DNA of 29,292 bases, from the NCBI GenBank assembly GCA_000388065.2, contig KB932210.1, one strand, 5' to 3'. Made by a program: the position numbers and the translations under genes. The notes under the pieces are model-generated. The model worked only from the letters and a program-made list of their open reading frames with translations, did no database searches and was not told the origin of the DNA. This DNA is from Fonticula alba ATCC 38817. Its lineage: Eukaryota > Protista > Nucleariida. Position 1 is the stretch's first letter, and every line of letters starts with the position of its first letter. Below are positions 8,301 through 29,292 of the stretch, piece after piece.

Positions 8301-9235
8301 NNGCCGGGTGCGCCGAGTGCACCGGGCCCGAGGAGGCGGACTGCGTGCGGTCGGCCAGGCCCTCCTCGCGCGGGCTGGCCCTCGGCCTGGGCATCGGGCT
8401 GGGCCTGCTAATGCTGCTGCTGCTGCTGGTGGCGCTGCTGGTCCTGCTGTGGCGGTACCGCCGGGCGGCCAAGTCCGGGGGCATGGACCGCATGGATGAT
8501 GAGGACGCCACCGTGATGAACACCATCGTGGAGCTGTCCCTCCCGGGCAGCATCCTGGTGAGCATTGCCAATGACTTCGCCCCGCTGGACGAGCAGCTGG
8601 GCGCCGGGACCCAGGCGTCGGTGTTCGCGGCGCGCGCCGTCGGGGCCGGCATCTCCGACCGCCTGGGCTGCCCGGGCACGGTGGCCATCAAGCAGCTGAA
8701 GGCCGAGCGTCTGACCCCCACGCAGGTGACCCTCTTCCAGAACGAGGTGGCGCTGATGTGGCTGCTGCGCGGCGCGCCGAACATCGTCCGGCTGTACGGC
8801 TACAGCGAGCAGCCGCCGGCCATCGTGATGGAGCGCTTCGACACGGACCTGGCCACGCTGCTGCACTCGGGGGTGCCGCTCGAGCAGGCCACCATCCTGG
8901 ACATCGCCCAGCAGTGGGCCTCCGGGCTGGAGGCCATGCACGCGCAGGGGATCGCCCACCGGGACCTGAAGCCGGGCAATGTGTTTGTGAGCCGGCGCCC
9001 GGATGGCTCCTGGACGGCGGCCCTCGGGGACCTGGGCACCTCGCGCAACCTCAACACCGACCGGTCGTCCACCCTGGTGAGCCAGGCGCCGGAGCTGAAC
9101 GCCATGACGGCGCGGTACGCGGCGCCGGAGGTGCTGGCCACCTTCCACCGGAAGCGCCCGCTCGATTGCGAGCTCTTCCTCCCGGCGGACATCTACTCCG
9201 CGGCCATCATGCTGTGGGAGTGCCTCATGCGCACG
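2389..9235 (+). CDS. Receptor kinase gene 2 (signal peptide, domain A, Cys-rich, domain B, furin-like/CxxC repeats, TM, TKL-like kinase); 3' end lost in gap 9236-9768
   Basis: ATG at 2389 (AAAGCCATGG) with signal peptide MAGRAHLRPASRSVLLLLALLAAAMAALRPVLA. The frame is broken only by the adapter artefact (3580-3746), intron 3889-4107 and gap 8078-8302. Cys-rich stalk ~5590-8350, TM LALGLGIGLGLLMLLLLLVALLVLLW, kinase with VAIK/HRDLKPGN/DLG/APE. Confidence 0.88.
3431..3746 (+). repeat. Exact 149-bp direct duplication (3431-3579 = 3598-3746) separated by an adapter; assembly artefact
   Basis: The two copies are identical. Removing 167 nt restores the frame (...DRTIVCD-DDMSIRTTRG...). Confidence 0.92.
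3580..3597 (+). other. Illumina adapter sequence AGATCGGAAGAGCGTCGT assembled into the contig
   Basis: 18/18 match to the start of the well-known TruSeq adapter read-through AGATCGGAAGAGCGTCGTGTAGGG, located exactly at the duplication junction. Confidence 0.95.
3889..4107 (+). other. Gene 2 intron 1 (phase 1; contains gap 4016-4072)
   Basis: Donor GTGCGT at 3889, acceptor CAG at 4105-4107. The spliced product ...GSWTASS-ICSTCAASHC parallels the equivalent junction in genes 3 and 4. Confidence 0.75.
8078..8302. other. Assembly gap (N run) within gene 2; other gaps at 4016-4072, 9236-9768 and 24467-24548
   Basis: N runs. The other three gaps abut poly-C tracts. Confidence 0.99.
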
Positions 9236-10407
9236 NNNNNNNNNNNNNNNNNNNNNNNNNNNNNNNNNNNNNNNNNNNNNNNNNNNNNNNNNNNNNNNNN
9301 NNNNNNNNNNNNNNNNNNNNNNNNNNNNNNNNNNNNNNNNNNNNNNNNNNNNNNNNNNNNNNNNNNNNNNNNNNNNNNNNNNNNNNNNNNNNNNNNNNNN
9401 NNNNNNNNNNNNNNNNNNNNNNNNNNNNNNNNNNNNNNNNNNNNNNNNNNNNNNNNNNNNNNNNNNNNNNNNNNNNNNNNNNNNNNNNNNNNNNNNNNNN
9501 NNNNNNNNNNNNNNNNNNNNNNNNNNNNNNNNNNNNNNNNNNNNNNNNNNNNNNNNNNNNNNNNNNNNNNNNNNNNNNNNNNNNNNNNNNNNNNNNNNNN
9601 NNNNNNNNNNNNNNNNNNNNNNNNNNNNNNNNNNNNNNNNNNNNNNNNNNNNNNNNNNNNNNNNNNNNNNNNNNNNNNNNNNNNNNNNNNNNNNNNNNNN
9701 NNNNNNNNNNNNNNNNNNNNNNNNNNNNNNNNNNNNNNNNNNNNNNNNNNNNNNNNNNNNNNNNNNNNCCCCCCCCCCCCCCCCCCTGCAGGAGGGAATA
9801 AAAATATCCACCTTTCCTGCGACAGGGCTGTGCCAGCCCACATCCCCGGTTCGGGTGTGCATCTCGCTGCGTCCGCGCGCGCGCGCGCCCGCATGTACCC
9901 CCCCCCCCCCCCCGAGATGGGACGCGCGCACGACGCACGGCGCCGGCATCAGGCAGGTGTGCCCGCGGCCGACGGCCAACCGAAGCGCGGGGCTCGGGCG
10001 GCATGCGGGAGGCCCAGATCGTTGGCAGCCGGCTGGCCCTGGCCGGCATTCCAACGGCATGGTGCCGCCCCGTTCCCCGGCCGGCATGCATTCCTGAGAG
10101 CCGTAATACCCTGCCGAGGGGCAGGCGCGGTCAGGGGAGCACCACCAACTGGGGCGGATCACATGTGGCGCATCACAGGTGGACCCGGGTGAAACTGACC
10201 CACACCGGCGCCCGGCCCACGATTTGTGTGGCAGGCGTCAACAGCTTTGGAACATCCTACCAGTCCTGGGGGCTTGGCATGGGGAATCTCCCCATGCCGG
10301 ATGCGCTTTCATCCCGTCCGGTTCGGTTTTCTGGCGGTCTCTGCGGCGGGGTCATACCACGCCATCCCGCCCGGCGCTTGGTGCGGGTGGTGCTGTGAGC
10401 CACGCCG

Positions 10408-10550
10408 AGTGTGTGTGTGTGTGTGTGTGTGTGCTTGTATTTGTGTCTGTGTTTGTGCTTGTGCTTGTGCTTGTATTTGTGTTTGTGTTTGTGCTTGTGC
10501 TTGCGTTTGTGCTTGTGCTTGTGCTTGTGCCTGTGTGTATGTGTGTATGT
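10408..10550 (+). repeat. Compound (GT)n / (TTGTGC, TTGTGT)n microsatellite upstream of gene 3
   Basis: Read directly. It yields the low-complexity VCVC/ACAC/HKHK/LCLC ORFs in the track. Confidence 0.9.
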
Positions 10551-10729
10551 GCCGGTGTCTGCGCATGAATGCACATGTATTTCCATGCGCCGGAGCCTGG
10601 CAGCAAACAAAATGCCACCCAGGCCACCACATTCCTCCCCTCCCCCGGCTCAACATGCGTCTCAGCCGGATTGCCTCTTGCCCCCCCCCCCCCCCCCGCC
10701 GCTTTGCGCGCTCGCCAGTCGCCCTCGCG

Positions 10730-13700
10730 ATGTCCCTCTGCGCCGGACCGTCCTGCGCGGGGCGGTCGCCCCCACGCCCACCGCCGGGCCTCGTCCTGCT
10801 GCTCCTCCTGTCGCTGCTGGCTCTGCTGCAGTCTCCCGCCTCAGGCCGGCAGGCCTCCTCCCCTGGACACACTCCACCGGTGGCCCCGATGGACCGGGCC
10901 CCGGTGGTGAGCTCGGCCGACCCGCCGGAATTGCAGTTTCCCCGCGCCCCGGTGCCACTTTTTGGCGGTGTCTCATTCCACACCGTGAACACGCTGCTTG
11001 CCAAGGAAACTTCGATCGCCATCATTGGCCAGGCCGCCGACAGTGCGCAGCTATTCTCCCAGGCACTTGTCGACTTCACCACGGCCCCGGAGTGGCGGGC
11101 CGGCTGCTATTTCAGCGAGGCACACCCGATCGACTCCATCTCGTCGCCTTTTGCCCTGAGCCTGGGCACGACGCGCTTTGTGCCGAGCCTATTCCAACCA
11201 AAGCCGGCCCTGTTGGAAGTTTCGGAAAACGTCATGCGACTGGTGCTGGCCGATTCGGACAGCACGTCGCATGAACACACCACCCCCACACGTGCACTGG
11301 CCATGGTGGCCGATTCCCCGGAGAAGGTCTTCGCCATCATGATGAGTTCCAGCGACGTTCCTTCGCTGCTGGTGCTTGCGAGGGACGCCCCCCCGACGAG
11401 TTTCGGCCTCCAGCTCAGTCACTTCACGTACGCCGGCGTGCGCGGCGTGCGCGGGTCCCAGCACGCGATCTTCCTGTGGCAAGGGAACCACATTGCCCGT
11501 GTGACCTTCGACAATCCAGCCAGCCCCGCCGCCCGGTACCTGGCCCTTCCATACACCATCATCAGCCTGGAGGCCGTTCGTATACACCCCAATACCAATG
11601 GCTCCATGGATGACCTGCTGGTTCTCTATGGCAATGGCGAGTGGGCCCTGTGCACCCAGTGCCATGGGCTCACTGCCCAGACCGACTTCCGGGTCATCCA
11701 CAAACACCCGGCTCCCGTGCGGGGCCGCATCCTGGCCGTGGCCGGCTACCAGACCGACACCCCGGTGAACAGGGCTTTCTTCCATGAAACTCTGACACCC
11801 AGCGGAGATGCCCTTTGGCGCATGGACTTCGATGCGGATGCCCAGCTGCTGGGCATGCGGCCAGTGGCCCTGGCGGCCAATGCCCTGGCCAATGCCCCGA
11901 CCCTGCAGGTGATGCAGCTCCGGCGGTCCTCCCAAGCCTGGACCATCGCCCTGGCCGATCGGTCCTACGTCTACTTCGACGGCTCGGACTTTGGCTGCGG
12001 CCCGTCGGGCGACGAGACGATCGTCTGCTCCCCGAGCAGCCCCGATGGCTGGGCGTGCAAGACGGGGCACGCGCAGTCGCTTTTCGGCACCCGCGGCCGT
12101 CTGTGCGACGCCTGCAGCCCGGGCTGGGGTGCCGAGTATTTGCCCACCGGTGCGCCTCTCTCGCCAGCCGGCCGGCCGGCCGGCCGGTCGCCGAGGCTCC
12201 CACCCCGCCCGCCCGCCCGCCCGCCTGTCCGCCTGCCCGCCCGCCTGCCCGCCCGCCCGCCCGCCCACCCGCCCGCCCGCGTCCCTTGCCCCTGGGGGCC
12301 CCTCACTAACGGCCCTGATGCTCATCCGCCCTTCCCCCCTCCACCCGTGGCATTTCATGTCCTGTGGTATACACACACACACACCGCCACAACCATGGCC
12401 TCCGGGGATGTCCCCCCTCCCCCCCTTGCCGGGCATCCAGGCGTCGAGTGCACCAAATGCCCCGACCCCAATTGCGCCGTGTGCAACCTGCAACACGGCT
12501 GCCTGGCCTGCCTGGAGGGCTTCCGCACCATCCTCCAGCGAGATGGCCAGGTATCCTGCATCGGCGACCCGGCCTGCCCCGAGGGGACCATCGATGATGG
12601 GGTGCTGTGCCTTGCATCCGAAGCGACCTCCCATTTGGGCGTTTACCTTCGGCTGGCCGAGTCGCCGGTCCGGGGGCTGGCCCCGGGCGAGGAGGTCGGC
12701 ACACTGGTGCCCACCTCGCTGGAGGTGGACCCGGCCACCGGCACGCTGCTGCTGCCCGGCCCGGGGCCCGTGGTGCCGGTCGGCTCGCGGGGCATGCTTT
12801 CCCTGCGCGCAGGCGGCTCGCCGGTCTACCTGCGGGATGACCGCCCGACCGCCGCATTGGACGCCATCCCGCTGGGGGAGCTCGGGCCGCTGGCGAACTT
12901 GGATGTTCGCTCCGCCATGGAGCTTCGGGTGTGGCCGGCATCGCAAGCTCGCCCATTCGTGGCGCTGCTCGTGTGCCACACCGGCGGGCTGGTCCTCTTC
13001 CACACGCAATGCCCGGCTGGCTGGTCCCAGCCCCAGGACCCGTGCCCGGTGGAACTCCGCTCTGAGCCCATCCCCGGCGGGTGCGAGCACATCGCCCGCC
13101 TGGAGGCCCACGCGGCCAGTGTCCTACGTGCCCCCGGGAACGGTGCGCTGCACATCCGCCTGGACATGGTCACCGGCAAGCTGCTGCCCTACCCGCCGCA
13201 ATCGCACGCCATCCATCATCTGGCCCTGCTCGAGACCCCGAACGTCGGGCTCGGCCCGGGGGACCGGCTTGTCGTGGCCCCCATCGCGGGGGGCAAGCTT
13301 CGCGCCGCCCCGGAGGCCATGCTCCTCCGGGAGGAGGCCCGAATGCAAGCCTTGACGATGGCCGGCGGCAGCCTGCTCCACCCGGGGCTGTCCCTGCCGG
13401 CCGGCTGGCATCCGGTTGTGGTTCGCACCCCGCACCGGGCCGCCTCCCCGGGGGAGCTCTTTGTCACCGGCCTGATCGCATCGGCCGACGGCAGCAACCG
13501 CGTCTTTTGGGAGGCGCTGCACCTGTCCCAGGGGGTCCTGCCGGTCGGGGCCCGGGCCCATGCGCTGCCTGCCCGGCGCCAGCGCCTGGCCACCCTGGCC
13601 GGTGGCCACCCGCCGGCCTTCCAGGTGCAGGCCATTCCCCTGCAGGTGCCCGGCGTCCCGGGCGCCCTCGTGGCCATGACACCGTCTGGCATCCATGTGG

Positions 13701-16700
13701 CGCCGGTCTACTGCCACCCCGTGACGGACCTGTGCGCCGCCCGGCCGGCCGTCGGCCAGCCCTTCGCCTCGTTCCTGCCCCGGCATCCGGCCGGCCACCT
13801 GCTGGCGCCTCGGGCAAGCTCGCTCGTCGGGGCCACCGGCCGGGCCTTCATGCTGTCCGGCCATGAGGCCGGCCCGCCGGCGCAGCTGACCATCGACATT
13901 GTGTCGTGCGCCGGCCCGGGCCAGCAGCCGCCACACTGCCTCGAGTGCCATGAGTCGTGCCTCGGGTGCGAGGAGGCCGGCCGGGAGGACGCGTGCCTCG
14001 GCTGCCCGGCCGGCCGGGTTCTCTTCCAGCGGACCTGCCTCGATGGCTGCCCGGCCGGCATGTGGCCCGATGCCGGGGTGTGTCGGGCCTGCGCCGTCGG
14101 GTGTGCCGCCTGCACCGGGCCCGGCTCCTGCTCGGGCTGCCTCCAGGGGGAGTTCCTCAGCCCGACCACCCGCCGGTGCCTCTCCTGCCAGGGGTCCTGC
14201 GCCGAGTGCGACGACGACGCGGCCTGCACCGTCTGCAAGCCGGGCATGGTTTTTTTGAGCCCGGACGCCCAGACCCGGTCCCTGTGCGGAAGCACCTGCC
14301 CCCCGGGGCAGCATGTCGGCGCTGCCCGGTGCGAGGAGTGCAGCGCGCCGTGCTCGCTCTGCGCCGGCCCCGGGCCCGACGCCTGCCTGGTGTGCGCCCC
14401 GGGCTTCCGCTGGCTCGGGCCGCCGCCGCCGCAGCCGCAGCCCGACACAGGGGGCACATGCGTCGCCTGCGCCGAGGGCTGCCACGCGTGCACCGACGCC
14501 CGGTGCCTGGCCTGCGCGGCCGGGCTGCTGCTGACCGACGGCGGCGCCTGCGTGGCCGCCTGCCCGGCTGGGTTCTTCAGCAACGGCGAGTCGTGCCAGC
14601 CGTGCGACGTCAGCTGCCGGACGTGCGCCGGCGGTGCGGCCGACCAGTGCACCGACTGCGGCGCGGGGCTGGAGCTCGTCGAGGCGGCCCCCGGCGTGGG
14701 GACCTGCGTGTCCGGCTGCCCGGAGGGCCAGTACCCGGCCGGGGGCGCCTGCCTGCCCTGCGACGCGGCCTGCGCCACGTGCAACGGCCCAACCGATAAG
14801 GACTGCTGGCGCTGCACCGGGGCCATCCTCCAGGACACCGAGTGCGTGCAGGCCTGCGCGGCCGGGCACTTTGCCGCCGGCGACCGGTGCCTGGCCTGCC
14901 ATGCCTCGTGCGAGGCCTGCACCGGCAGCCGGAGCACCGACTGCACCGCCTGCCCGGCGGGCCTGCTGCCGCTGCCGGCCGGCCAGTCGCCCATGCGCTG
15001 TGTCCCCGCCTGCCCGGTGGGCTCCCGGCTGACGGCCGCCGGCTGTGCCCCCTGCGGGGCCCGCTGCGCCAGCTGCCCGGGCGAGGCGTCCACCTGCGGC
15101 CAGTGCGAGCGCGGGTGGCTGCTCGATGGCCCGGCGTGCGTGGCGTCCTGCCCGGCGGGCAGCTGGCCGCTGGGGGTCGCCTGCTCCGGCTGCCATGCCG
15201 CGTGTGCCTCCTGCCACGGGCCGGGGGCCGGCGACTGCCGGTCGTGCGCGGCGCCGGCGCCCCTGCAGCTGGACAGCACCTGCCATGGCGCCTGCCCGGC
15301 CGGGACCTTCCAGTCCGACCACATGTGCCTCCCCTGCAGCGGCATGTGCGCCGGCTGCTCCGGGCCCAGCAGCACCGAATGCACCGGCTGCCGGCCGCAG
15401 GGCTTCCTCCTCCAGGGGGCCTGCTTGGACTTCTGCCCCGGGGGGCATTTCGCCGATGGCCAGGCCGCCTGCCAGGCCTGCCATGCAAGCTGCGCCATGT
15501 GCACCGGGCCCCTGGCCACCGAGTGCACCGGCTGCCACGAGCCGGGGCTCCTGCACGCGGGCCGCTGCGTGGACCAGTGCCCCCCGGGCAGGGTGGCCTG
15601 CCGGGCCACGGGCCAGTGCGACCCCTGCCCGGAGGGCTGCACCTCCTGCCAGCCGGGCGGCCCGGTCCCGGGCCACATGTGCTCGGCCCGGTGCACGGCC
15701 TGCCAAGCGGGGCTCGTCCTTTTCCAGGACCGCTGCGTGGAGGCCTGCCCGGCGGGGGAGTTCCACGCCGACTCGCGGGCCACCCTGTGCCAGCCCTGCT
15801 CGGATGTGTGCGCCTCCTGCTTCGGCGCGGCCGACATGTGCACGGCCTGCGCCGACGCCGGCCTCTGGCTCCAGTGGGACACGGGGGTCTGCCTGGGCGC
15901 CTGCCCGCCGGGCCAGGCCCCCACCACCTCGGGCCATGTGTGTCTCCATTGCATGCAGGGGTGTGCCCGGTGCACGGCCGGCCCGGCGGCCGACGCGTGC
16001 ACCACCGCCCCCGACCGGTCGCTCGCCTGCCTGGCGGCCGGGTCGTGTGACGAGTGCGCGCCCGGCCTGCTGCTCTTGGGCCGGGACAAGTGCGTGGCCG
16101 CCTGCCCGGAGGAGGGCTTCTTCGCCGACTGGGCGGCCGCCCCGGCTGCCTGCCGCCCCTGTGACCCCCGGTGCCGGGCGTGCGTCGGGCCCACCGGGGC
16201 AGACTGCGCCTCCGGCGACAACCCCGCCCGCCGTCGGCTCGGTATGCCCCTCTCACGTCTCTGCCCGTTGCGTGGGCGTGGGTCCCCTTTTTTTTCTTTC
16301 GCCCCGCACACACGCCTCGGGCCCCTCAACTGACATGGACCCCGTGCCCAGCGCTCGGCCTGGGCATCGGATGCGGGCTGCTGCTCCTGCTTCTCCTGGC
16401 GGTGCTGGTGTTCTTCTTGCTCCGGCGGCTCCTGCGCCAGCGCCGCGCCTCGGCCAAGGTCCGCCACCGTGGGCAGCTGCTCTTGCTGGCTGCGCCCCCT
16501 CCTCCCCCCCCCCAAGCGGGCCATCGCCCCTCCGCACGAGGCCCTTTGCACTGACACCCGAGCCCGGTCCGTAGGAACACGACGACGAGGACGCCACCGT
16601 CATGAACACCATGCTGGAGCTGTCGCTCCCGGGCAGCATCCTCGTGAGCATCGCCAGCGACTTCGCGCCGCTGGACGAGCAGCTGGGCGCCGGGACCCAG

Positions 16701-17621
16701 GCGTCGGTCTTTGCGGCGCGCGCCGTCGGGGCCGGCATCTCCGACCGGCTGGGCTGCCCGGGCACCGTGGCCATCAAGCAACTGAAGGCCGCGCGCATGA
16801 CCCCGGCGCAGGTGACCCTCTTCCAGAACGAGGTGGCGCTGATGTGGCTGCTGCGCGACGCGCCGAACATCGTCCGGCTGTACGGCTACAGCGAGCAGCC
16901 GCCGGCCATCGTCATGGAGCGCTTTGACACGGACCTGGCCTCGCTGCTGCACTCGGACGTTCCCCTGGACCAGGGCACCATCTTGGACATCTGCCAGCAG
17001 TGGGCCTCCGGGCTGGAGGCCATGCACACGCAGGGCATCGCCCACCGGGACCTGAAGCCGGGCAACGTCTTTGCCAGCCAGCGCCCGGATGGCTCCTGGA
17101 CGGCGGCCCTCGGGGACCTGGGCACCTCGCGCAACCTCAACACCGACCGGTCGTCCACCCTGGTGAGCCAGGCGCCGGAGCTGAACGCCATGACGGCGCG
17201 GTACGCGGCGCCGGAGGTGCTGGCCGCCTTCCAGCGCCGGCGCCCGCTGGCCCCGGAGCTCCTGCTCCCGGCGGACATCTACTCCGCGGCCGTCATGCTG
17301 TGGGAGTGCCTCACGCGCATGGTTCCCTGGGCTGGTGCGCTCCCATCCCCGCCTCCGCCCCTTCTGCCATCGGCCCATGGGCCCACATGTCACGACCGCC
17401 GGCTAACACCCTGCCCCCGGGGAGGGGGCGGGCCCGTACACCCAGGCATGAACTTCGAACACATCATGCTGGACGTCGTGGCCGGCAAGCGCCCCGCCGT
17501 CCCCCCCGACGCGCCACTTGGCGACCTGCTCCGCATGGGCTGGGACTCGAGCCCCCATAGCCGGCCGCTGGCCGCCTCGCTCCGGCAAAAGTGCGCGCAC
17601 GCCTGGACCAGCCAACAGTAG
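10730..17621 (+). CDS. Receptor kinase gene 3, complete; exons 10730-12149, 12441-16241, 16352-16458, 16575-17334, 17446-17621 (6264 nt, 2087 aa)
   Basis: Signal peptide ...PPPGLVLLLLLSLLALLQSPASG. All four introns are GT-AG with compatible phases and the summed length is divisible by 3. The spliced TM region reads RRRL-ALGLGIGCGLLLLLLLAVLVFFLL; kinase motifs match genes 1 and 2; stop TAG at 17619-17621. Alternative in-frame ATG at 10655. Confidence 0.88.
12150..12440 (+). other. Gene 3 intron 1 (291 nt, phase 1, in-frame read-through, contains a (CCGC)n repeat)
   Basis: Donor GTGCGC, acceptor CCAG. Removal gives EYLPT-G-VECTKC and deletes a Pro/Arg low-complexity insert; position equals intron 1 of genes 2 and 4. 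Confidence 0.8.
16242..16351 (+). other. Gene 3 intron 2 (110 nt, phase 1)
   Basis: Donor GTATGC, branch-like CTGAC at 16330-16334, acceptor CAG; joins the ectodomain to the TM exon. Confidence 0.85.
16459..16574 (+). other. Gene 3 intron 3 (116 nt, phase 0)
   Basis: AAG|GTCCGC donor, CTGAC at 16551-16555, TAG acceptor. Spliced SAK-EHDDEDATVM matches HDDEDATVM of gene 1. Confidence 0.85.
17335..17445 (+). other. Gene 3 intron 4 (111 nt, phase 1, in-frame)
   Basis: Donor GTGCGC, CTAAC at 17403-17407, acceptor CAG. Spliced VPWAGMNFE aligns without gaps to VPWQGRDFE of gene 1. Confidence 0.85.
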
Positions 17622-18624
17622 GGGCTCGGCTCGGAGGCGCGCGCGCGGGCAGGATGCCCGGTGCCTCCGGCCTCCCCTCCACGCCCCTCGAGGCAGCGGG
17701 CCTGGCCGCCTGTGCCGCCCCTTGTCCAGGGGCATCGCCGCCTTCCGGCCGGGATTCGACCGGCACCGGCAGCCCGCCTGGGGGCTGCCCGAAATACAGC
17801 CAGCCGCCTCGTGGCGGGCCACTGCCGTCCGTCGAGCAACGCATCCCTCGGCCCGCTGGGCGATGTGGGCAAAGGGGGTCGGGGGCGATCACGGGGCGGC
17901 AATGGGCTTGGAGCCATGGAAGGGCATGTCCCTCGCGCTACGTGCCGTCGGGGGCCCAGCCGGGGGCCGGGAGCGGGGCTTGCCGGCCCGGCCCATGTTC
18001 ACGGCGCATGGGCGGCCACACTGGCCGGCGGATCGGCCGCCGGGCGCGGGGCATCATGCGAGCAAAGCACCCACAGGCAGGAAGGGCACCCCGCCATCGT
18101 CCGCGTGTCCTCCCCGCCCGAGAGCCGGTCGACGTGCAAGTCCGCCGACGCGTGTCTCGGCAGCCCCTGCCAAGGAGCCCCGGGCCGCGGGCTGGGCCCG
18201 CCCCCCAGGCGGCGCCATACAATCGGGCCCTCTCCCCCGGAGCCTCTCACGGGGCCCCGGGGCCGGGGTGCAGAGGGCAGGGACGACCCAGGGCAAATGG
18301 CCCCTGAAAGCGGGCCGCCGGCGTGCGGCCGTCAGGGCCGTTGGCAGTCTGGCCCATGGGCGCCCCGAGAAGTGGGCAGCCGGATCAATCGACCAATAAA
18401 TATTGGAGGCCCCCATATATTGGACGCGCGGGGAGCGGAACACAGAATGTCGCCGCTCGCGCATGGCGAGGCGGGCCCAGCATCGCCGGGTGGGCCCCGG
18501 GGCCTCTCCCCCGGCGCCTCGGCGTGGTTCATATTCTTGTTCGCGCTGCTGCGCCCCGCGTGGCCCGGCCCGGCGCCCGCACGCCGGGTGCCGAAAAGGA
18601 GAAAGCGCCGCTCCGGCGACCGAC

Positions 18625-18637: not shown

Positions 18638-18711
18638 TGTCCGAACCAGGACTCGAACCTGGGACATTCTGTGTGTTAGACAGATATGATAACCATCTAC
18701 ATCATTCGGAC
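18638..18711 (-). tRNA. tRNA-Val(AAC): tRNA-Val(AAC), copy 1
   Basis: Minus strand folds as GTCCGAA/TTCGGAC acceptor stem, D arm ATG..TGG..CAT, anticodon arm TCTGT-CTAACAC-ACAGA, T arm CCAGG-TTCGAGT-CCTGG and discriminator A; 74 nt, no intron. Confidence 0.96.
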
Positions 18712-20012
18712 TGAGGGAGGAGGCGGCCCTAGGGCCCCTAACGTGCGCGCTTTGGCCACCCGCCCGGGCGGAGAGCCTCGCCGGCCTCCCGGCGTTCCCG
18801 GGGCCGCGACCCATGCCGGCTGGCCTGCCGGGCGTGGCCGCCCCAGGGGAGCAAAGGGGGCCGGGGGATGTTCTTCGTGTCTCCCCTCCGACCCGGGGAT
18901 ACTGCAGCTTGCGCGCGTGCGCGCGCGCGATCACACGGCCTGGCCGACCGCCATCCGGCCGGTGGGCCGGGACCGCCGTGCCCGCATCGAGCCCCTGCTG
19001 TGGGGCGCCTCTCGCCGGGCGGCTGCCACCCGCCAGACATGGCTCCTCGCACGGCCATCTGGCCGGCTCGGCGCATGGGCGGCGCCCCGCCCGCCGGGCC
19101 CCCCCCCTGCCGGCATCCGGGCGGTCCGCGTGCCGACCGGCCACAAGCAAGCCCGGAAGCACCGCCGGCTTGCGGGCTCCGGCCCGGGGCGCGGCCAGCA
19201 GCGGCCAGGAGGGGCCGTATGGCCCGGCTGGCGCGACCCCGGCCCGGTCGAGCCCCGACCACCGGGCCACAGTGCCACCCATCGGCCACAGGGCGCCGTC
19301 TTCCCCAGCGTACATGAGGGGGATATGGTCGCCTGGGCGGGCCTTCGGACCTGCAGCGCCCGCCGTGCGGCCCCCCCCCCCCCCCCGGTGTCACGGCCCC
19401 GGCCGACCTGGGGGCCGGCGGGCCGCTGCTGCTGGCCTCGGGCTCCGGCAGCCGTGCGGCCCCCGCACGCCGGGCGCCCGGCACCCATGCGCCCCCAAGC
19501 CGGAGCATGATGTGCCTGCCTGGCACGGTCCACCGGCCAGTCGCGCCGGCAGGTCCGGCATCACGGCCCGGCCACCGGGCAGTGGCCCATCCCGGCATTC
19601 GGGCTGCCCGGTTGGAAGGCGGCGGTGTTTCTTTCTTTCATCCGGCCGCTGGGCATGGCCCCGGCGCAGGACATCACCCGCGCGGGCCCCCCGGCCTCGA
19701 GCGGAGCCCCCTCTTCCGGCAGCTCACCCTCCTCGGGGCCGCTCGCTTGCCCTGGGCCGCCGGCACGGCCGGGCCCTCTCCCACGGTCGGCCCCCCCCCC
19801 CCCCTCGCCCGGCCCTCCTGCTGACATGTCCCCCATGCTGCCGGCGGCCTCCCCTCCCGACACCCGGGTGACATATGCCTGACGCTCGCATGCGCGCGGC
19901 GCAGGGCCACCTCTCGACAGGCCCCCCCCCTTGCACCCGGAGAGCCGGGCGCAGATGGACATACACAGAGAGATGGGAAGGGGACACGCACAGCAACCGA
20001 CACACGCCCGGC

Positions 20013-20018
20013 AAAAAA
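20013..20018 (-). terminator. Pol III terminator (T6) of tRNA-Val copy 2
   Basis: TTTTTT on the minus strand 5 nt downstream of the tRNA 3' end. Confidence 0.75.
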
Positions 20019-20023
20019 GGATC

Positions 20024-20097
20024 TGTCCGAACCAGGACTCGAACCTGGGACATTCTGTGTGTTAGACAGATATGATAACCATCTACATCATTCGGAC
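20024..20097 (-). tRNA. tRNA-Val(AAC): tRNA-Val(AAC), copy 2
   Basis: Identical 74-nt sequence to copy 1 with unrelated flanks and its own T-run terminator. Confidence 0.96.
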
Positions 20098-21123
20098 TGG
20101 AGGCTGGCCACGCGCGCTGCCATATGACCTCTGTAACCTTCGCCGCCCAAATCCCAGAATTGGTCACGGGTTGTCACGTGACCACATCTGAGAAGTCGGA
20201 TCCCCGGCTCTCCTCTCCTCCTGGGGAGAGCCGCGCCTCCGTGTACAGACCTTCGCCCCGCCCTGCCGCCTCCTCCCTCGGCGCCAGGGAAGAGGGCAAG
20301 GTGCTCCTTCTCCCATGCGCCTAACCCCTATATAAGGGACGGCATCCGCGCCCTCTTTCCCATGTACGACTACCCTAGAAAGGATAGTCATTGCCTCCTT
20401 GGCCTGGCTTTCTCCCCCCCAAGCCAGTAGTCTCTGATGTAAATACCTTTGCTTCCCCCAACAAGACCGCGCGCGCTTTATTGTCATCGCTTGCCTTCTT
20501 GTACCTCTCGAGACGAAATGCTTTCTTCCGAGGCGTGATCTCCATATCGGAGAACAAGTCTCGGTGAATCAGTCCGAGCGTTTCAACCTCAAGTGACTTT
20601 GTGCAGCCATATCGTCACCGCCGGCGCCGCGTCCGAACTTCGCTCCGCTCACCTCCTCCGCGCCTGCCTCACCTCGCCCTGCTGTCGCCTCCCCGCCAAA
20701 TCTGGTCGCGCCCTCTACGTGATCAAATAGCCGGGAGATCCATTTTTTACCTTCCTTTCCCCGTAGGTGGGCGTTGGCGTCGTCCGTCAACCATGCAACC
20801 CATCCCCTCTCTTTCCCATGTATTGCCTCTTTCCTGGGCACCCCTATATAAGGACCCCCCTTTCCCGCCTCCCCTCCAAGGGCTCAGCACCTTGAAGGAT
20901 AGTCATTCTCTTTACGGAGGCCTTGACTTCCCGCTGCCCTGCCTCTGTACGTCGCTCCCCCTGGAGCGGTGTGACCCGGTCCCTGATGTACTCCCCATAA
21001 AGACGCAGATCACCAGCTTTCCTTTCTTTTGTTGTTGTGTCCACGTCCGAGTGGTGACCCTCTCGGGAGGGAAGGCGCTGGGTGGTTCAGCGGGGGCCCT
21101 CATCGGTCCCTCAGAATCACGCA

Positions 21124-21465
21124 TCAGAACCGGAGTGTTTCAGAGTGTCCAGCTCCCGAGTCTTTCGAGGGGGGATTCTCATATCGTCTGCATGGCAGAC
21201 GTTTCCACCCTTGAGGCTTGCCCTCAAGTTCGATGACGTTGTTGGATTTCGGGCATTCCGCTCGGAACATCGTGTGCGCCTTCAAGCCTGGCTGCTTATT
21301 TGGCGTCTTGTCCCGATCAGAGTGGGCAGAGGAACCACCCAGTCTCCTGGGCGGATGTCGTGCCTGCGCGTCTTGGCCGTGCGGGCCCCTCAATGCCTTT
21401 CCCTGCCTCCTTCTCGAGGCGCTTCTTTACTTCTACGAGAGAACCTCCGGGGCGAGCTCTTGGTT
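21124..21465 (-). pseudogene. Frameshifted remnant of the integrase C-terminal (SH3-like/GPY-F) region
   Basis: After the ORF stop, fragments in alternating frames read LVEVKKRLEKEAGK, RTAKTRRHDIRPGDWVV, NNVIELEG and GNVCHADDMRIP. These resemble the order helix, pGDxV, 'n.y.l', 'vH' of Ty3/gypsy integrase tails. Pattern recognition only. Confidence 0.5.
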
Positions 21466-23736
21466 TTAGGGGAGCAGGGACATTGGGGAAGTGGCATCAT
21501 GCTTCCCATGGACCAGGAGGTGAGGGCTGAGCCCCAGCGAGGTCGGGCACGCATTGTGCGCCTGCACTGCTCGAGAGATGGCTTCCTCGATGTCGATGGT
21601 GTCATCCTCTGCCACGATGGTTGCGAGCTTTGCCTCAATAGAGCGGATTCCCCCCTCTGCCGTGCCATTGGATGGCGCCCTACACGCTGCCGAGCGTACA
21701 TGTACGATGTCTTGTCCCATGAGGAATGATATGAACTCTACCGAGGTGAAGAGAGCATCGTTGTCAGAGATGAGGACTCGCGGAGAGAAGGGGGCGATCA
21801 CTTCCTCCAGGAGTCTCTCCTTGACCATCCGAGAGGTGATGCGGCCTTCAAACGGGATAGCCATGACATAGCGAGTCAGGACATCCACGACGATCAGGCA
21901 CTTGAGTTTCTTCCTTGGGTCCTGTTTGATCCGGAACTCGGTAAAGTCGATCGCCACGCATTGCATGGGACCATCCGAGTGGGAGTTGTTCCCAGTGTTA
22001 TCAGCGGACGGCTCGATGGGGGGGAGCTTGCCAGGTGCTCCCGAATCCTCGTCATCCCGGCGGGGGCGCTGGGATGCCTGTGAAGGGGGGTCAGGCGAGC
22101 GAGACCGCCTACGAGAGCGCACGCCCCCCGGCCCGTTCCTCCACCCTTCGGTCCTGGCGCCCGGAGCTCCCTGGCTCCGTGTGGCGACCGATCGGGGACC
22201 CGTGGGCTCCTCAATGTCGAGCCGGACAATGTGTCGGCGCAGCTCGTGGAATCTTCCAGAAACCGATGCCTTCTGGAACATAGCCCGGAGTTCCTTCGCG
22301 CGGTTTGCGTCCGCGCGCTGGCGAATGTCGACCCGATCGAGCCTGGGGTCGATGTCCTTCGGACCCGCCGGGTCTAGAAAGTCGTACCCGGCAAGCATCA
22401 TCGCGAGAGACACCTCCTCCCGGTCAAAGTAGTCATGCAGCTCCTCGACCACTTGCTCCTTAGTGAGGTCCAGTCCGGCCGCGCCGATGCACCACGCAGT
22501 CAGTTCGACTACCAGTGACGGGCTGGCCATCAGGGCGCCCCATCTGCGCAGTGCATAGTTGAGAATCTTCTGGTGGGAGCAGCGGACGATCGAGCCCAGG
22601 TAGGCTTGCATGACGATCGTGGCTTCGGGAACATTCTCAGGAATGTCGTGGTGAGTCAATTCCTCCAGCAGGGAGAACACCTCCTCCGTGGTCCAAGCCT
22701 GCAGGACCCCGTTGAGCAACATGAAGTTGAGCATGAATTGGCGCAGAGCCAGCCGGCCAGGCTCGTGGAGGTCTGAGGGTAGTTTGAGTCCCACGACTCG
22801 GATGGGAGTTTCGCGCTTGGCCTCCTTCGGGGCGGGCGTCAGCGCCTTCAAGAACTTTCCAACGTTCTCGGGAGTGATGTTCAAACGCCTGACCGTCGAA
22901 GGGCCGCCAGGCGGCCGCAGGAGACTGCGAGCCTCCTGCTGGGCAAGATAGAGCGGACTCTTCTCGTCGGGGAGATCCATGGCAGCCCCGGCCATTTCGG
23001 CCGTGCCCATGGTGACCCCGGGGCCGGGCCTCTTGCCGGGGTCCTCCCAGAGCTCGGAGAATGCCGAAACAACCTCGGGATCCTTCAGCAGCAGCTGCGC
23101 GCCCGGAAAGATTGGCTCACCTTTCCGCAAAAGATCCACGACTACGGGGTAGTACTGCTCCCCATAGCGCTCGGCAGCCCGCGTCGCCACTTCGTGGCGC
23201 TTCTGGTTGCTTGGCAAGAACTCCAAGGCCATCTCTCGCATGCCCTCCAGCGCTGAGGGACCAAAGATGGAGTCCTGGAATTGCTGGGAGAGGTCCGGAG
23301 TGATGCAGATCCTGGCAATCTCCGCATCTGAGGCTCGCCGCGAGCCTGGCACCCTGTTCCGAAAAGCTTGAATTAGGGTGCTGGAGGAAAGGAAAAGTGT
23401 GACGTACGCGTCGGCAAATCGATCACTCGTGAACAGACGGTTCGCTTGGTTCATGCTGACCACCAGGGCGAATACCGCATGGACGATCAGCACTCTCGGC
23501 TCTTCCTGGATCCGGGGCCTCCACAGACCCGGCAGGGTCCCAATGTCCTGCGACGGGTCAGCAGCGTACTGTAGGATGATGGAGAGAAGGGCACAGGCAT
23601 CATCCACCTCGGGCATCTCGAAGTGAGCCGCGCTGGCATGGATCTCCACGTCGCCAAAGCGGATGAGGGTGGCCTGCGGTCCCTTCACGGCGGACTCCTC
23701 GGTGTCGCGTCGGAAGGTGAAGTTGGGGAGCGACAT
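21466..23736 (-). CDS. 756-aa ORF: ~570-aa unknown (possibly Gag-like) N-terminus fused to a retroviral-type rve integrase core
   Basis: Likely start MSLPNF at 23736. Basic RSRRRSRSP linker, then GKLPPIEP...PMQCVAIDF (D 21946-21948), LIVVDVLTRYVMAIP, LISDND (D 21763-21765) and SNGTAE (E 21655-21657); exactly 35 residues separate the last D and E. Confidence 0.88.
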   Translation of the reverse strand: MSLPNFTFRRDTEESAVKGPQATLIRFGDVEIHASAAHFEMPEVDDACALLSIILQYAADPSQDIGTLPGLWRPRIQEEPRVLIVHAVFALVVSMNQANRLFTSDRFADAYVTLFLSSSTLIQAFRNRVPGSRRASDAEIARICITPDLSQQFQDSIFGPSALEGMREMALEFLPSNQKRHEVATRAAERYGEQYYPVVVDLLRKGEPIFPGAQLLLKDPEVVSAFSELWEDPGKRPGPGVTMGTAEMAGAAMDLPDEKSPLYLAQQEARSLLRPPGGPSTVRRLNITPENVGKFLKALTPAPKEAKRETPIRVVGLKLPSDLHEPGRLALRQFMLNFMLLNGVLQAWTTEEVFSLLEELTHHDIPENVPEATIVMQAYLGSIVRCSHQKILNYALRRWGALMASPSLVVELTAWCIGAAGLDLTKEQVVEELHDYFDREEVSLAMMLAGYDFLDPAGPKDIDPRLDRVDIRQRADANRAKELRAMFQKASVSGRFHELRRHIVRLDIEEPTGPRSVATRSQGAPGARTEGWRNGPGGVRSRRRSRSPDPPSQASQRPRRDDEDSGAPGKLPPIEPSADNTGNNSHSDGPMQCVAIDFTEFRIKQDPRKKLKCLIVVDVLTRYVMAIPFEGRITSRMVKERLLEEVIAPFSPRVLISDNDALFTSVEFISFLMGQDIVHVRSAACRAPSNGTAEGGIRSIEAKLATIVAEDDTIDIEEAISRAVQAHNACPTSLGLSPHLLVHGKHDATSPMSLLP

Positions 23737-23940
23737 CTCAGCTAGTATCCCGGTCGGCCACAATGTATGTGGCAGAGTACGATCGCTGCCTAAGTGAAGC
23801 GCAGCGGTGTGGTCCCCGGGTAGGGGATCGGGCAACGCGTGGATGAACGGCAACGTGTGTATGTCTCTGGTGGATGCAAGGGAAAATATGCAATCGGCAG
23901 CGATGCAGGCGCATCGGTGGACACAGGGCGAGGGCCGCCG

Positions 23941-23950
23941 CCTTATATAC
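23941..23950 (-). promoter_or_regulatory. TATA-like box GTATATAAGG ~205 nt upstream of the integrase-ORF ATG
   Basis: Rare AT-rich motif in GC-rich DNA, correctly oriented for the minus-strand ORF. Confidence 0.55.
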
Positions 23951-24582
23951 CGAGGCTGTGGCACTCGCACAAGCGTTGGCAGTCGTCAGGATCACGGGCC
24001 GTGTCACGAGCGGGGCATTTCACAGCGAGAACACGGCATGTGATGCCGGCGGTCAGCCCACACACCCGCCCGCCGAGCCACGGGCCCCTGAGGCGCTGCC
24101 AACCTTCTCGGCCATGCCGCCCGGCCCCGCCCCGCCCTCCCACGCCTCGGGGCCCCCAGCCCGGGCGGGCCCCCTGACGCCCAGTGGCGCCCGCTTTTCC
24201 GTATGTTCGTCCCCCGCCTGGAAAGGGCCGCCCGAACTGCCGAAAGCGTGTTGGCTGGACACGCCGACCCCCGGCGGCTGGTCGCCCTCGCTGGGTTTCT
24301 CTTTTTTTTCGTTCGGAGCCCCCCACGCCATCTGAGACCGCACCTTCGGCGGATCTCGACCCCTGGCTCGTCGGCTCCGCTGAGCACACCGTTCCCCTTC
24401 CGGCTGGCGGCGGAAAAATTCAGCAGCCAGCCCCTTGTCGGGGCACGCCGCCGGGTATGGCCCCCCNNNNNNNNNNNNNNNNNNNNNNNNNNNNNNNNNN
24501 NNNNNNNNNNNNNNNNNNNNNNNNNNNNNNNNNNNNNNNNNNNNNNNNCCCCCCCCCCGCCCGCTTTCAGTCCCCTGGCACC

Positions 24583-27500
24583 ATGCATGTCGGGGTGCGC
24601 CGGGCCCCGGTGCCGCCGCCGGGCTTGCTGGTGTGCCTGCTCTTGCTGGTGCTTGGCGCGGCGCACCACGTCGTGCTCGGCACAGGTGCGAGCACGCACC
24701 TCTGCATGTCGCCCTTCTTGCTGTTCAAGGACTGGCGCTTCCATCAGGCCGGCCCGCTCGGGCTGGCCGAGCCGCCGGCCACCCTGCTGGCCCGCTTCCC
24801 CATCTACCCCTCTTCCAAGGTGGACGTCTTCTCCCAGCTGTCCATGGACTTTGACGCGGCGCCGGAATTCCGCCTCGGGCCCTTCTTCAATCCCCTCTAC
24901 CCCCAGTGGAACATGGAACCCTTCAAGTCGCTGGAAAACGTGAACGGCACGCCGATGCTCATCCCGTCGACCACGGCCGGCCGCGACCCGGCGCTTCTGG
25001 TCGTCGGGCAGACCTATGTCGAACTGCTGACCGAGAGCAGGAGCGTGCTCTACTCCTCGCCCCTGCGCTTCCTGGCCGGGCTCGCCATCGGCCCCGATGA
25101 GGTCTTCCTCCTGCTGGCCATCGAGGATGACAGCTTGACCGTGGTGCACCTGGCCGCCGAGCCAGAAGATGTGTCCTTCGAGGAGGTGGACCTGGACGGC
25201 CTGACGGCCAGCCAGGTGGAGGCCGTGCCCGCGGCCGCCACAGGCTCCGGGCTGGGGTTTTACGTCTGGCAGGGCCGGCTCCTGGCACATTTGGAGGTCA
25301 CCGGCGACGAGGTGTCGGTGAAGAGGTACTCGATGGGGCCGGACCAGGCGGGCATCGTGAAGCTCTTCCCCGGGCACCTGTCCAGCAGGGCGCCCGGTGC
25401 CACGGGCGTCGATGACCTGGTGCTCCTGCGCGACGACCGCACCTGGGAGGTGTATGTGGGCGTGGTCGGCAGCATGCTGGGCACGGCTGCCCTGACTCCG
25501 GCCGCCTCCTTCGCCCACCCGGCGGACGCCACGCTCCAGGGGCGGATCCTGGGGGTGTCGTCCACCGAGACCCCGGGCCCGGTGCGGGAGCTCTACTGGC
25601 TGAATGCCGCGGAGCCGGAGCCGGGCCGCCCGCGCCTGTGGCGCCTGGAGCTGACGGCCACCGGCCAGCTGGGCAGCCTGATGCCGGTGCTGCTGCCGAC
25701 CTCGAGCGCGATCCAGGTGGGGCACTTCCAGCCGGCCATGCTTCGCACCGGCCCCAGCACCATGAGCCTGGCCCTGGTGGACAACACCCGGGCCTACTTC
25801 AGCCAGGAGGACTTTCTGTGCCCTGTGGACCGGTCGATTGACTGCTCGCCGAGCTCCGTGCTCGGCTGGCAGTGCGCCCCCGGCCATGTCCTCAGCCCGC
25901 AGGATAGCCACTTGCGCCTGTGTGCTGCCTGTGACCGTGGCTTCTACTTGGACCCCCTCGCCGGGCCGGGCGGTGTGTTTCTCGGGCGCGTGGGGGCCGC
26001 GGCTTTTTCCTCCGCCTCGGGCCATGCCGTGTGCTGACCTTTGTGCTTGTCCCTCTTCGCCGGCTGGGTGTGCCGGCTGGCGGCCGTTCGCCTTGCGGTA
26101 TCCCTTGGTGCCGATTCGTGGATGCCGACTGGTACCGATTGCCACTGGCGCTCATGCGTGTGCGTGTGTGTGTGTATGTTGCTGTGTGTGTATGTTGCTG
26201 TGTGTGTATGCTGCTGTGTGTGTATGCTGCTGTGTGTGTATGTTGCTGTGTGTGTATGCTGCTGTGTGTGTATGCTGCTGTGTGTGTATGCTGCTGTGTG
26301 TGTATGCTGCTGTGTGTGTATGCTGCTGTGTGTGTATGCTGCTGTGTGTGTATGTTGATATGTGCGTGTGTGTTGATATGTGCGTGTGTGTATGCATGTG
26401 CACGCCCCTGTGCCCCTCTACACGCCCCTGCGTGCACGTGCTTGCGTGCGCCCGCGCCTGACATGCGCCCATGCCATCGCGTGCGCATGCATGTGCACGC
26501 GTGTCTGTGAATGCGGCGCGCCCGACCGAAATGTGGCCCCCCGGCCCGGACCCCCACCCGGCACATGTCCCTGGCCCCGCTGGTCGTCTCGCCCGGCCGC
26601 GGGCCGCCGCCAACAGACGTCCTCTGTCAGCCCTGCCCAGGCCACATGTGCAGCGCGTGCGCTGGTGACATGTGCCTGTCGTGCAAGCCGGGACTCCTGC
26701 TGCAGGTTCTCTCCCCCTGGAAGAGCGCCTGCGTGGAGACCTGCCCCCAGGACTGGGTCATCAACGGGGACTTCTGCCTGCCGGAGGAGACCTGGGCCAG
26801 CCCGATCCACCAGTCCACACTCTTCCCCTTCACACTGGGCGATAGCGACCCCACTCAGCCCATGAACATCCTGATGCCGACCACGCTCAGCGCCTCGCTG
26901 GGTGGCCAGCCAATGTTGGACATGACCATCGCCACCGGCACCCCGCACAGTGGCTATCTCAGCTTCTCGCAAGGCAGGACCGATGCCCTGCACCTCGTCC
27001 ATCAAACCAACCAGTTGTCCCCGCTGCGGAGCATCCGCCTGCCCTCCTCGCATCCGGCCGCCGACTTCCAGGTGGATGGGGCCTTGGAGTTTGTGCTGGC
27101 CCCGGCCCAAGGGCTGCCCCTGGTGGGCCAGGCCTTCTGCCATGGGGGTGGTCTGAGCATCGTCTGGGCCACTTGCTCGTCGCCTGCCACCCAGGGCCAG
27201 AGCCGGTGCGACGCGAGCTTCACCAAGCAGGATCTGTCTATCGGCACGTGCACCGGCCTGCACCGGGTGTCCGACAGCGCGTTTGCCGCCTCCCTGAGCT
27301 CCGCAGGCATGGTGCTGGTGGACATGTCGCTGCGCCCGCCGACCGTGCACCACCTTCGCCTGGTCCAGCAGGACACACGCATGGCGGGCTTCGCCTGGCC
27401 CGGCTACCAGGGCCGGCCCCGGGTGGCGGCCCGCATGGCCGACTTCCACGCCGCCGACCAATTCCCCAACCTGGCCGTCCTGGCGGTGGACCTGCTGCAA

Positions 27501-29292
27501 TCGGAGGACCCGCGCGCCGAGGCGGCCCTCCTGGGCCCGGTGACCCAGGACCCGGCCACGAACCGCCTCGAGCCGGTGGTCGTCCCCACCCCCGGCCGGG
27601 ACAGCGCGTCCGAGCTCTTCCTCACGGGGCTGACCCCGGGCAGCGCGTTGGACGAGGTGGTCTGGCGGGCGGTGCACATACCAATCGGCGGCGCGCCGCT
27701 CCATGGCCGGACCTCGGACCTGCATGGCCCGGCGCTGGACCTCGCCAACCTGCCCTCGTCCGTGGGCTGGCACAAGGTCCTGCCCCTGGACCTGGGCCTG
27801 CCCGGCTTCCCCGGGGGCCTGGTCCTGGTCACCCCGGACGCCATCTGGCTCTCGGTGCTGGGCTGCCCGCCCGGCGCTCGGATATGCGTCCTGCGGAAGC
27901 CCACAAAGGTGACATACGACGCCCCCCTTTCCTGGCCCTCGAACATGGGCCCGATCCGGCTGCCGGGCCATTTGCAGCCGGTCACCCCGCTGGGCGGGCC
28001 CCTGGCCGGGCAGACTGCCCTGGAGCAGGTGCATCTCATGCTCCACGCGCCCGGCTTCACGCCCACGGGGCTGGGCCTCGGCATGGACCGCTGCCCGGGC
28101 GGGACCTTCGGCCCTGACTGCCTCCCCTGTGCCGAGGTGTGTGCCACGTGCACCGGGCCAGACCCGGAGGATTGCACGGCCTGCTGGCTGGCCCTGCCCG
28201 ACGACCCGCAAGGGTGTGTGAGCACCTGCCCGCCGGGCCTGCGCCCGGACCTGGCCCTGGGCCTGTGCCAATGTCAGATGGATTGCGCCGGCTGCCACCT
28301 GGACCCCGGCGGGTCGGGGCAGTTCATTTGCCACGCCTGCCCGCCGGGGATGGCTCTGCCCGTGGCCCAGCCGCTGCCCTCCCAGTGCCACGCGTGTCAC
28401 TCCTCCTGCAGCGAGTGCCACCTCCCGGGCGACCCCGGCGCGTGCAGCGCCTGCCCCGAGGGCAAGGCGCTGCACTCGGGCCAGTGTGTGCCCCGCTGCC
28501 CGGCCGGCATGACCGCCGATCCGGCCCAGCGCCTGTGCATCCCCTGCCCGGTGCCTGGCTGCCTCCGGTGCGGCGACACCCAGTGGGATGTCTGCGACGC
28601 CTGCCAGCCGGGGGACTTCTTGGATGCCGGCACCAACCGGTGTCTTTCCTGCGATCCGTCGTGCGTGGACTGCAGCGGCTCCGCTGCCTGCACCACCTGC
28701 CGGAGCAACTTGGTATTCCTGGCGACCGAAAGCTCGACGCCCTCGCTGTGCGGCAGCACCTGCGCCCCGGGCGAGTATGTCGGCGCTGGCCGATGCGCCG
28801 CGTGCGATGGGTCTTGCGCCCTGTGCGCCCAGGCGGCCGACCGGTGCCTGGTGTGTGCGGCCGGCTTCCGCTGGTCCGGCCCCGCGCCGGCGGCCGGCGC
28901 CACCGCCGCATGCGTCCCCTGTGATCCTGGGTGCGCCTCCTGCAGGGCGGACGGCTGCCTGGTGTGCGGGGCCGGCCTCGTGCTGGGCCCCAACGGGCAG
29001 TGTATCGCCGACTGTCCGGCCGGGATGTTCAGCAACGGCGAGTCGTGCCAGCTGTGCGACGTCAGCTGCCGGACGTGCGCCGGCGGCGGGGCCGACCAGT
29101 GCACCGGCTGCGGCACGGGGCTGGAGCTTGTCGAGGCGGCCCCCGGCGTGGGGACCTGCGTGTCCGGCTGCCCGGCGGGCCAGTACCGTGCCGGTGTTGA
29201 ATGCCTGCCCTGCGACGCGGCCTGCGCCACGTGCAACGGCCCAACCGATAAGGACTGCTGGCAGTGCGCCGGGGCCGTGCTGCAGGGCGACG
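24583..29292 (+). CDS. Receptor kinase gene 4, 5' part; exon 1 24583-25972, exon 2 from 26617 to beyond the window end
   Basis: Signal peptide MHVGVRRAPVPPPGLLVCLLLLVLGAAHHVVLG; domain A ends FLCPVDRSIDC. Exon 2 opens D-VLCQPCPGHMCSAC; spot checks at its start and end show the same open frame, with domain B and the CNGPTDKDCW Cys repeats shared with genes 2 and 3. TM and kinase are inferred to lie outside the window. Confidence 0.85.
25973..26616 (+). other. Gene 4 intron 1 (644 nt, phase 1)
   Basis: Donor GTGTGT, acceptor AACAG. Removal bypasses the stop at 26035-26037 and joins at the same protein position as in genes 2 and 3. Confidence 0.82.
26157..26395 (+). repeat. ~12 copies of the 16-bp unit TGTGTGTGTATG(C/T)TGC within gene 4 intron 1
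   Basis: Read directly; source of the VCVCMLLCVYAA and HTHSSIHTQQ ORFs. Confidence 0.9.

Follow-up and report, generated by a model that had tools for sequence, protein, structure and literature searches.

The DNA analysed here, referred to throughout as the window, is a stretch of 29,292 nucleotides of contig KB932210.1 from the nucleariid protist Fonticula alba ATCC 38817 (assembly GCA_000388065.2). On its minus strand, at 21466-23736, lies a real gene of 756 codons, encoding an orphan protein of 568 residues fused to a bare integrase catalytic core. The gene is preceded by a repeat resembling the long terminal repeats (LTRs) of retroelements and followed by a low-GC tail that reaches a tRNA gene. 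We put at about one half the probability that the open reading frame (ORF) is the remnant of an otherwise unknown, nearly extinct F. alba LTR retroelement family, internally deleted and truncated at its 3′ end.

An orphan module fused to an integrase core

The open frame spans 21466-23970 on the minus strand and comprises 834 codons from stop to stop, or 756 counted from the ATG at 23736. At the local base composition, with stops occurring at 0.033 per codon, an open run of this length has a chance of ~8e-13 per frame. Codon-position GC is strongly periodic along the ORF, with values of 0.66/0.44/0.76 over residues 1-530, the N-terminal half, and 0.60/0.42/0.70 over residues 586-756, in the integrase part. 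The ORF listing, the codon-position GC and the run probability together bear out an earlier sequence-only reading of the locus, which had described a single uninterrupted ORF of 756 residues. The motifs quoted in that reading are likewise present: RSRRRSRS at residue 540, GKLPPIEP at 569, VAIDF at 594, ISDND at 656 and NGTAEG at 690.

A Pfam search of the whole ORF at E≤1 matched only rve, with no match to protease, reverse transcriptase (RT), RNase H, zinc-finger or gag families, and 19 neighbouring ORFs on both strands were equally devoid of matches to these families at the same threshold. Residues 500-596 hold only two His and one Cys, so that an HHCC finger is absent, and the lack of protease, RT, RNase H and HHCC finger noted earlier is confirmed. 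Protein homology searches with the whole ORF, the integrase region or the integrase alone returned no matches, and an exact-sequence look-up of the 756-residue ORF found no record. Scans of viral contigs, metagenomes (one with a degenerate pattern built from a 100%-conserved 11-residue stretch) and bacterial and archaeal genomes, together with a tblastn search of phages, yielded no relatives of the ORF.

The N-terminal module, a putative Gag-like ORF1, occupies residues 1-568 (22033-23736, minus strand) and has no match in Pfam at E≤1 and none in the PDB. A HMMER pass over 1.84 billion representative proteins gave two matches to it, both F. alba fragments, of 194 and 98 residues. These are H696_03271 and H696_03272, annotated as 'hypothetical proteins' and adjoining on scaffold KB932205.1, at a locus, termed L001 below, that tblastn also matches to the module. 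With only these fragments matching, the description of the ~570-residue N-terminus as an unknown domain holds. An AlphaFold model of the N-terminus, aligned with the two fragments, reached a predicted local distance difference test score (pLDDT) of 36; this low-confidence model is the sole basis for calling the N-terminus 'helical-looking', and that description is left unconfirmed.

The C-terminal end of the module, residues ~520-568 (22033-22179, minus strand), forms a basic tail rich in Arg, Ser and Pro, with 11 Arg and Lys in 49 residues, and the corresponding segment of L001 is also Arg-rich. The tail sits at the position expected of a nucleocapsid-like nucleic-acid-binding tail. It is from two features only, its position and this basic tail, that we infer the Gag identity of ORF1. 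The best-conserved block of the module lies at residues ~280-517, with 62% identity to L001. Measured against the broken L001 copy, the ratio of nonsynonymous to synonymous substitution rates (dN/dS) is 0.68 over residues 1-97 and 0.42 over residues 280-515.

The integrase part (residues 569-756 and the stop codon; 21466-22032, minus strand) is assigned through Pfam rve and the retroviral cores in the PDB. Pfam rve (PF00665) matches residues 589-685 (21682-21972, minus strand) of the catalytic core carrying D597, D658 and E694, scoring 39.6 bits with the whole ORF and 42.8 bits with the integrase part, above the cutoff of 32.6. In a phmmer alignment, the triad of the core matches that of a solved alpharetroviral integrase residue for residue, with D597, D658 and E694 falling on residues 64, 121 and 157. 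Thirty-five residues separate D658 from E694, and the intact D,D-35-E triad recognised earlier is thereby upheld.

The integrase part begins 28 residues ahead of the first catalytic Asp and stops 62 residues past the Glu. Judged from its sequence, it is a bare catalytic core, with neither a zinc-binding N-terminal domain nor a C-terminal domain. The short lead before the Asp, the absent finger and the lack of any further domain give it the look of a fragment cut from a larger pol. An AlphaFold model of the integrase part alone has a pLDDT of 40.

The core has the D,D35E organisation of retroviral and Ty3/gypsy integrases, but its similarity to them is very weak, no better than to bacterial IS3 transposases. 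The best PDB matches of the integrase part are alpharetroviral and spumaviral cores (E 0.002-0.03, ~20 bits), with no solved Ty3 integrase among the matches. On the bacterial side, NCBIfam scores are 45.4 bits for IS3 and 30.8 bits for IS481, far under the equivalog cutoffs of 160 and 224 and setting the core apart from the transposases of both families. PHROG 157, a transposase, matches the integrase part with E 1e-7, and the best plasmid tblastn match is to IS3 transposases at 32-34% identity (E ~5e-3). We classify the predicted protein as a very divergent rve core with an intact triad and leave its clade placement unassigned. A PDB match to 'Tako8' (E 1e-9, zero qualifying stretches) is an artefact, its score being added up from weak matches to a designed repeat protein.

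A second copy bracketed by direct repeats

H696_03272 (98 residues) and H696_03271 (194 residues), at L001 9136-10888, are two pieces of a single broken copy of ORF1 and not independent genes. The locus shares 72% DNA identity with window positions 22056-23982, and by tblastn it spans residues 1-568 of the window ORF at 47% identity. This alignment runs through two reading frames and meets two in-frame stops, which identifies L001 as a broken copy. The shared stretch extends from the start of the repeat to residue 568, with nothing in common past that point. Neither the integrase part nor the sequence beyond it has any similarity to L001, and Pfam finds no pol domains in the ORFs of this locus. 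L001 is the only relative of the window copy found. Beyond the repeat, the two loci have unrelated flanks, as expected of a mobile unit.

The L001 ORF ends 16 codons past the end of homology, and a 3′ repeat follows within ~50 nt. Residue ~568 is either the natural end of ORF1 or the junction of a chimera.

The repeat, ~255-260 bp long, is present once in the window, at 23766-24027 (minus strand), upstream of the gene, and twice in L001, where it brackets the broken ORF1 as a direct repeat. The 5′ copy of L001 (8847-9111) lies directly upstream of ORF1 and the 3′ copy (10934-11186) just downstream. An nhmmer profile built from the three copies matches only these three places within the window and L001. 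Pairwise identity among the copies is 58-63%, and Smith-Waterman scores of 42 and 36, compared with 19±2.6 for shuffled sequences, are 6 to ~8.5 standard deviations above expectation. No ORF1-like sequence follows the 3′ repeat of L001, which marks it as a terminal repeat that bounds the unit, as opposed to the beginning of another tandem gene.

Several hallmarks of an LTR accompany the repeat. The window copy contains a TATA-like TATATAAGG at 23941-23949 (minus strand), ~80 nt from the repeat start; the window holds three occurrences of this 9-mer where none is expected, all of them inside the low-GC insert. Two of the three repeat copies start with TG and two end with ACA, the window repeat and the L001 3′ copy each having both. 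A purine run, GGGGAGGAG, abuts the L001 3′ copy at the position of a polypurine tract and is seen in L001 only. Between the window repeat and the ATG lies a 29-nt leader (23737-23765, minus strand) with a putative primer-binding-site-like stretch, in which TGG begins 3 nt after the repeat; the corresponding TGG begins 2 nt after the L001 5′ repeat. The layout of L001 is repeat-ORF1-repeat without pol, and that of the window is repeat-ORF1-integrase core without RT.

Base composition sets the insert apart from its surroundings. The window has 70-77% GC overall, and the region 20000-24000 stands out at 55-64%. GC content at third codon positions (GC3) is 0.70-0.76 in the element ORF compared with 0.92 in host genes, and its codon usage is unlike theirs. 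The L001 copy has drifted toward the host and now has 68-71% GC. The insert is bounded on one side by the tRNA-Val gene and on the other by host-like coding sequence on the plus strand (from ~24550 to 26037, GC3 near 0.9); it therefore measures at most ~4 kb, too little to conceal a pol.

A low-GC tail of 1.37 kb (20098-21465, minus strand; 55-60% GC), delimited by the GC profile, extends from the stop codon to the tRNA gene, and its membership in the element is uncertain. No coding capacity is detectable in it: it carries no periodic GC signal and has no similarity to L001, and its open pieces have no Pfam or PDB match. These negative searches past the stop leave the 'decayed C-terminal tail' of the sequence-only reading unsupported, and a by-eye impression of remnants of an integrase C-terminal domain in the frames past the stop has been withdrawn, each piece being negative in Pfam and the PDB. 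Within the tail, clusters at 20324-20392 and 20809-20907 (plus strand, opposite to the ORF) share three exact 13-14-mers in differing order, one of which contains TATATAAGG; the clusters may represent a pair of promoter-like modules, or else what is left of a different element.

A proposed deleted LTR retroelement and its alternatives

A deleted LTR retroelement would account for the window as follows. The repeat at 23766-24027 would be the 5′ LTR, supplying a TATA promoter, and would be followed by the leader with its primer-binding-site-like TGG stretch. The 568-residue module would be the Gag-like ORF1 of the family, mostly helical according to the low-confidence model, with an Arg-rich tail that may bind nucleic acid. 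An internal deletion would have removed whatever separated ORF1 from the integrase core, which presumably encoded protease, RT, RNase H and the zinc-binding domain of the integrase, and an in-frame junction would have produced the one long ORF. This copy would also have lost its 3′ LTR and the C-terminal domain of the integrase. Without the missing pol domains, the window copy would be unable to reverse-transcribe itself, and the bare catalytic core on its own is predicted to be unlikely to integrate DNA. We infer three steps of this account: the Gag identity of ORF1, the existence of a full gag-pol ancestor and the origin of the fusion by deletion.

Three options had been offered when the locus was first described, and the LTR-like repeat with its TATA motif and the integrase-less second copy make the first, a deleted Gag-integrase retroelement, the best fit. 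The second, an RT-less integrase transposon, gained no support, as there are no terminal inverted repeats, no second copy has the integrase, and the integrase is a bare core lacking DNA-binding end domains. The third, a domesticated capsid-integrase gene, is possible but unlikely, an ORF too intact for old neutral DNA being set against codon usage unlike that of host genes and the absence of an orthologue elsewhere. Full-length copies ordering gag, protease, RT, RNase H and integrase behind this same N-terminus were absent among predicted proteins, the scope searched. Repeats are reported to make up only 0.36% of the F. alba genome (bioRxiv 10.64898/2026.06.24.734286), a content so low that a family may plausibly be left with just one or two relics.

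Several observations weigh against this reading. No capsid homology or fold could be shown for ORF1 (Pfam and PDB negative, model pLDDT 36), and no protein search recovered an RT-bearing relative. The window lacks a 3′ repeat: the nhmmer profile finds none, and blastn of the tail with 7-mers was likewise negative. The primer-binding-site-like stretch, compared with six tRNAs, matches at best 10 of 18 positions, which is chance level. The 5-bp flanks of the L001 repeats differ and, at ~40% repeat divergence, no target-site duplication is readable; the window has no 3′ end with which to make the comparison. The window and L001 copies lose homology at the same point, residue ~568, a coincidence that two independent deletions alone are insufficient to explain. 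Finally, the 58-63% identity of the repeat copies indicates that the family is old, yet the 756-codon ORF is free of stops, so that the window copy must be either young or under selection. With neutral substitution simulated at 2%, 5%, 10% and 14%, the proportion of trials without a stop in the ORF is 36%, 6.5%, 0.5% and 0%. A young copy would have shed its 3′ end all at once. Youth is favoured by the low GC content of the entire insert and its tail, given the drift of L001 to 68-71% GC.

Selection is the other way to keep the frame open. The fusion would then be a retroelement-derived gene of ORF1 and integrase core, exapted in F. alba with the former LTR as its promoter, in which the integrase core would act as a nucleic-acid-binding or nuclease module and not in transposition. 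We consider it possible but unlikely that the fusion is such a selected, lineage-specific exaptation of a capsid-like protein and a retroviral-type core, or, less likely, the working protein of an RT-less element with direct repeats. The 756 codons are intact even though the only relative is ~28% diverged and broken, the TATA box and the catalytic triad have been preserved, and what has gone, namely the 3′ repeat and the end domains of the integrase, is dispensable for such a gene. The dN/dS of 0.42-0.68 against the broken copy points the same way, but values of 0.4-0.7 taken against a pseudogene are weak evidence, and a single young copy accounts equally well for the intact ORF. Composition counts against exaptation: since L001 has drifted hostward, a long-resident host gene should have drifted likewise, whereas the GC3 of the ORF remains at 0.70-0.76 against 0.92 in the host. 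No orthologue appears in any other organism among the 1.84 billion representative proteins.

The coincidence at residue 568 bears on a further explanation, in which the repeat-ORF1-repeat unit is a small element or gene family complete in itself and a 5′-truncated integrase fragment of another element was joined to it in frame. Template switching, or an insertion and a deletion, would have made the join. In its favour, the two copies cease to be homologous precisely at the start of the integrase part (568/569), the L001 ORF ends 16 codons on with the 3′ repeat within ~50 nt, and the tail past the integrase resembles neither the repeat nor L001. The similar codon-position GC of the two halves, however, leaves no compositional seam, no donor element is known, and the junction falls in basic sequence of low complexity, in which similarity would be expected to fade in any case. 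We regard a chimera as decidedly improbable.

A new family of RT-less integrase DNA transposons, similar to Ginger or Tdd-4 and using the 568-residue N-terminus as the DNA-binding part of a transposase, would suit a lone ORF whose D,D35E core is intact, with no RT and no database relative, which leaves a new family possible, but it is very unlikely, as the two sides of the ORF have no inverted repeat in common within 19500-27000, inverted TATATAAGG motifs share nothing past the 9-mer, the sole other copy lacks an integrase and is bounded by direct repeats, and the integrase, found in one copy only, has no zinc-binding N-terminal or C-terminal domain.

Genomic setting and related systems

Downstream of the ORF, the low-GC insert runs up to the 5′ side of a tRNA-Val(AAC) gene (20024-20097, minus strand; ARAGORN, Rfam tRNA 60.7 bits), a neighbour and not part of the element. 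A duplicate tRNA-Val(AAC) gene lies 1.3 kb away at 18638-18711 (minus strand); the two share 95% identity across 97 nt, a stretch that takes in the 3′ T-run, and their flanks are unrelated. LTR retrotransposons associated with tRNA genes include Ty1 and Ty3 of yeast and DGLT-A of Dictyostelium. The position of the insert resembles theirs and, as a single case, hints at a tRNA association; unlike them, the recognisable element ends 1.37 kb from the tRNA gene, and the L001 copy lies 8 kb from its nearest tRNA. We make no claim of tRNA targeting from a single instance.

On the other side of the insert, a host-like coding region with GC3 of ~0.9 and no Pfam match runs divergently to the element on the plus strand (24184-26037), crossing an assembly gap at 24467-24548. 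A 713-codon ORF on the minus strand across the same region (24004-26145) is a GC-driven artefact, codon-position GC placing the true frame on the plus strand.

Much of the remaining window is occupied by a tandem array of receptor-kinase genes on the plus strand (97-1032, 3672-8411, 8495-9197, 10226-17621 and 26500-29292). The array has a period of ~8.1-8.4 kb (about 8.2 kb), each unit encoding a receptor with furin-like or VSP-like cysteine-rich repeats followed by a protein-kinase domain, and the paralogues share 75-94% identity in the kinase part. A furin-like receptor-kinase gene of the same kind and base composition neighbours L001, at 12830-18430. Tandem repeats of a 16-nt GT-rich unit (~18 copies) and a 20-nt CT-rich unit (26123-26418 and 2150-2341) lie between the receptor-kinase genes or in their 5′ regions. 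The draft state of the assembly is evident from an 84-nt poly-G run (1205-1288), an exact 149-nt duplicate (3431-3579 and 3598-3746, 18 nt apart) and runs of N at 4016-4072, 8078-8302, 9236-9768 and 24467-24548, near which local structure is to be read with care.

Among described systems, the closest counterparts of the window element are non-autonomous LTR elements that carry GAG only ('TR-GAG') or GAG with decayed pieces of pol including integrase, reported mainly from plants (PMC13570524). As in these elements, direct repeats of a few hundred base pairs with TG..CA ends are present, the first ORF is kept and RT is lost, and L001 has the layout repeat-ORF1-repeat. The differences are that the host is a holomycotan protist and not a plant, that ORF1 has no detectable similarity to known GAG and no autonomous partner is known, and that the window copy has a single repeat and an ORF1 fused in frame to an intact integrase core. 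Autonomous Ty3/gypsy and copia LTR elements differ from the window in having paired LTRs, an arrangement seen here in L001, and in encoding protease, RT and RNase H, none of which Pfam detects in the ORFs of the window or of L001.

Elements of other kinds are more distant. Ginger1 and Ginger2-TDD transposons encode an rve-type integrase without RT, have terminal inverted repeats and extra DNA-binding domains, and form families of integrase-bearing copies. Compared by description only, they share with the window ORF an RT-less rve integrase, whereas neither terminal inverted repeats nor extra domains nor an integrase-bearing family were found here. Polinton/Maverick elements do not compare with a region of at most ~4 kb, in which genes for a protein-primed DNA polymerase, a packaging ATPase and a capsid were not found. 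Domesticated integrase-derived host genes differ from the window gene, which has no homologue outside F. alba and a GC3 that is not host-like.

As a deleted, non-autonomous LTR retroelement, the locus would be an ordinary kind of object, and its value would be greater were selection shown to maintain the intact ORF. Capsid-like and integrase exaptations are known in animals, and to our knowledge none has come from the nucleariid branch next to fungi. Should the retroelement reading be true, the window would add a retroelement family with no other record to one of the opisthokont genomes poorest in transposable elements, and the F. alba genes H696_03271 and H696_03272 would be explained as parts of one Gag-like ORF that has been broken.

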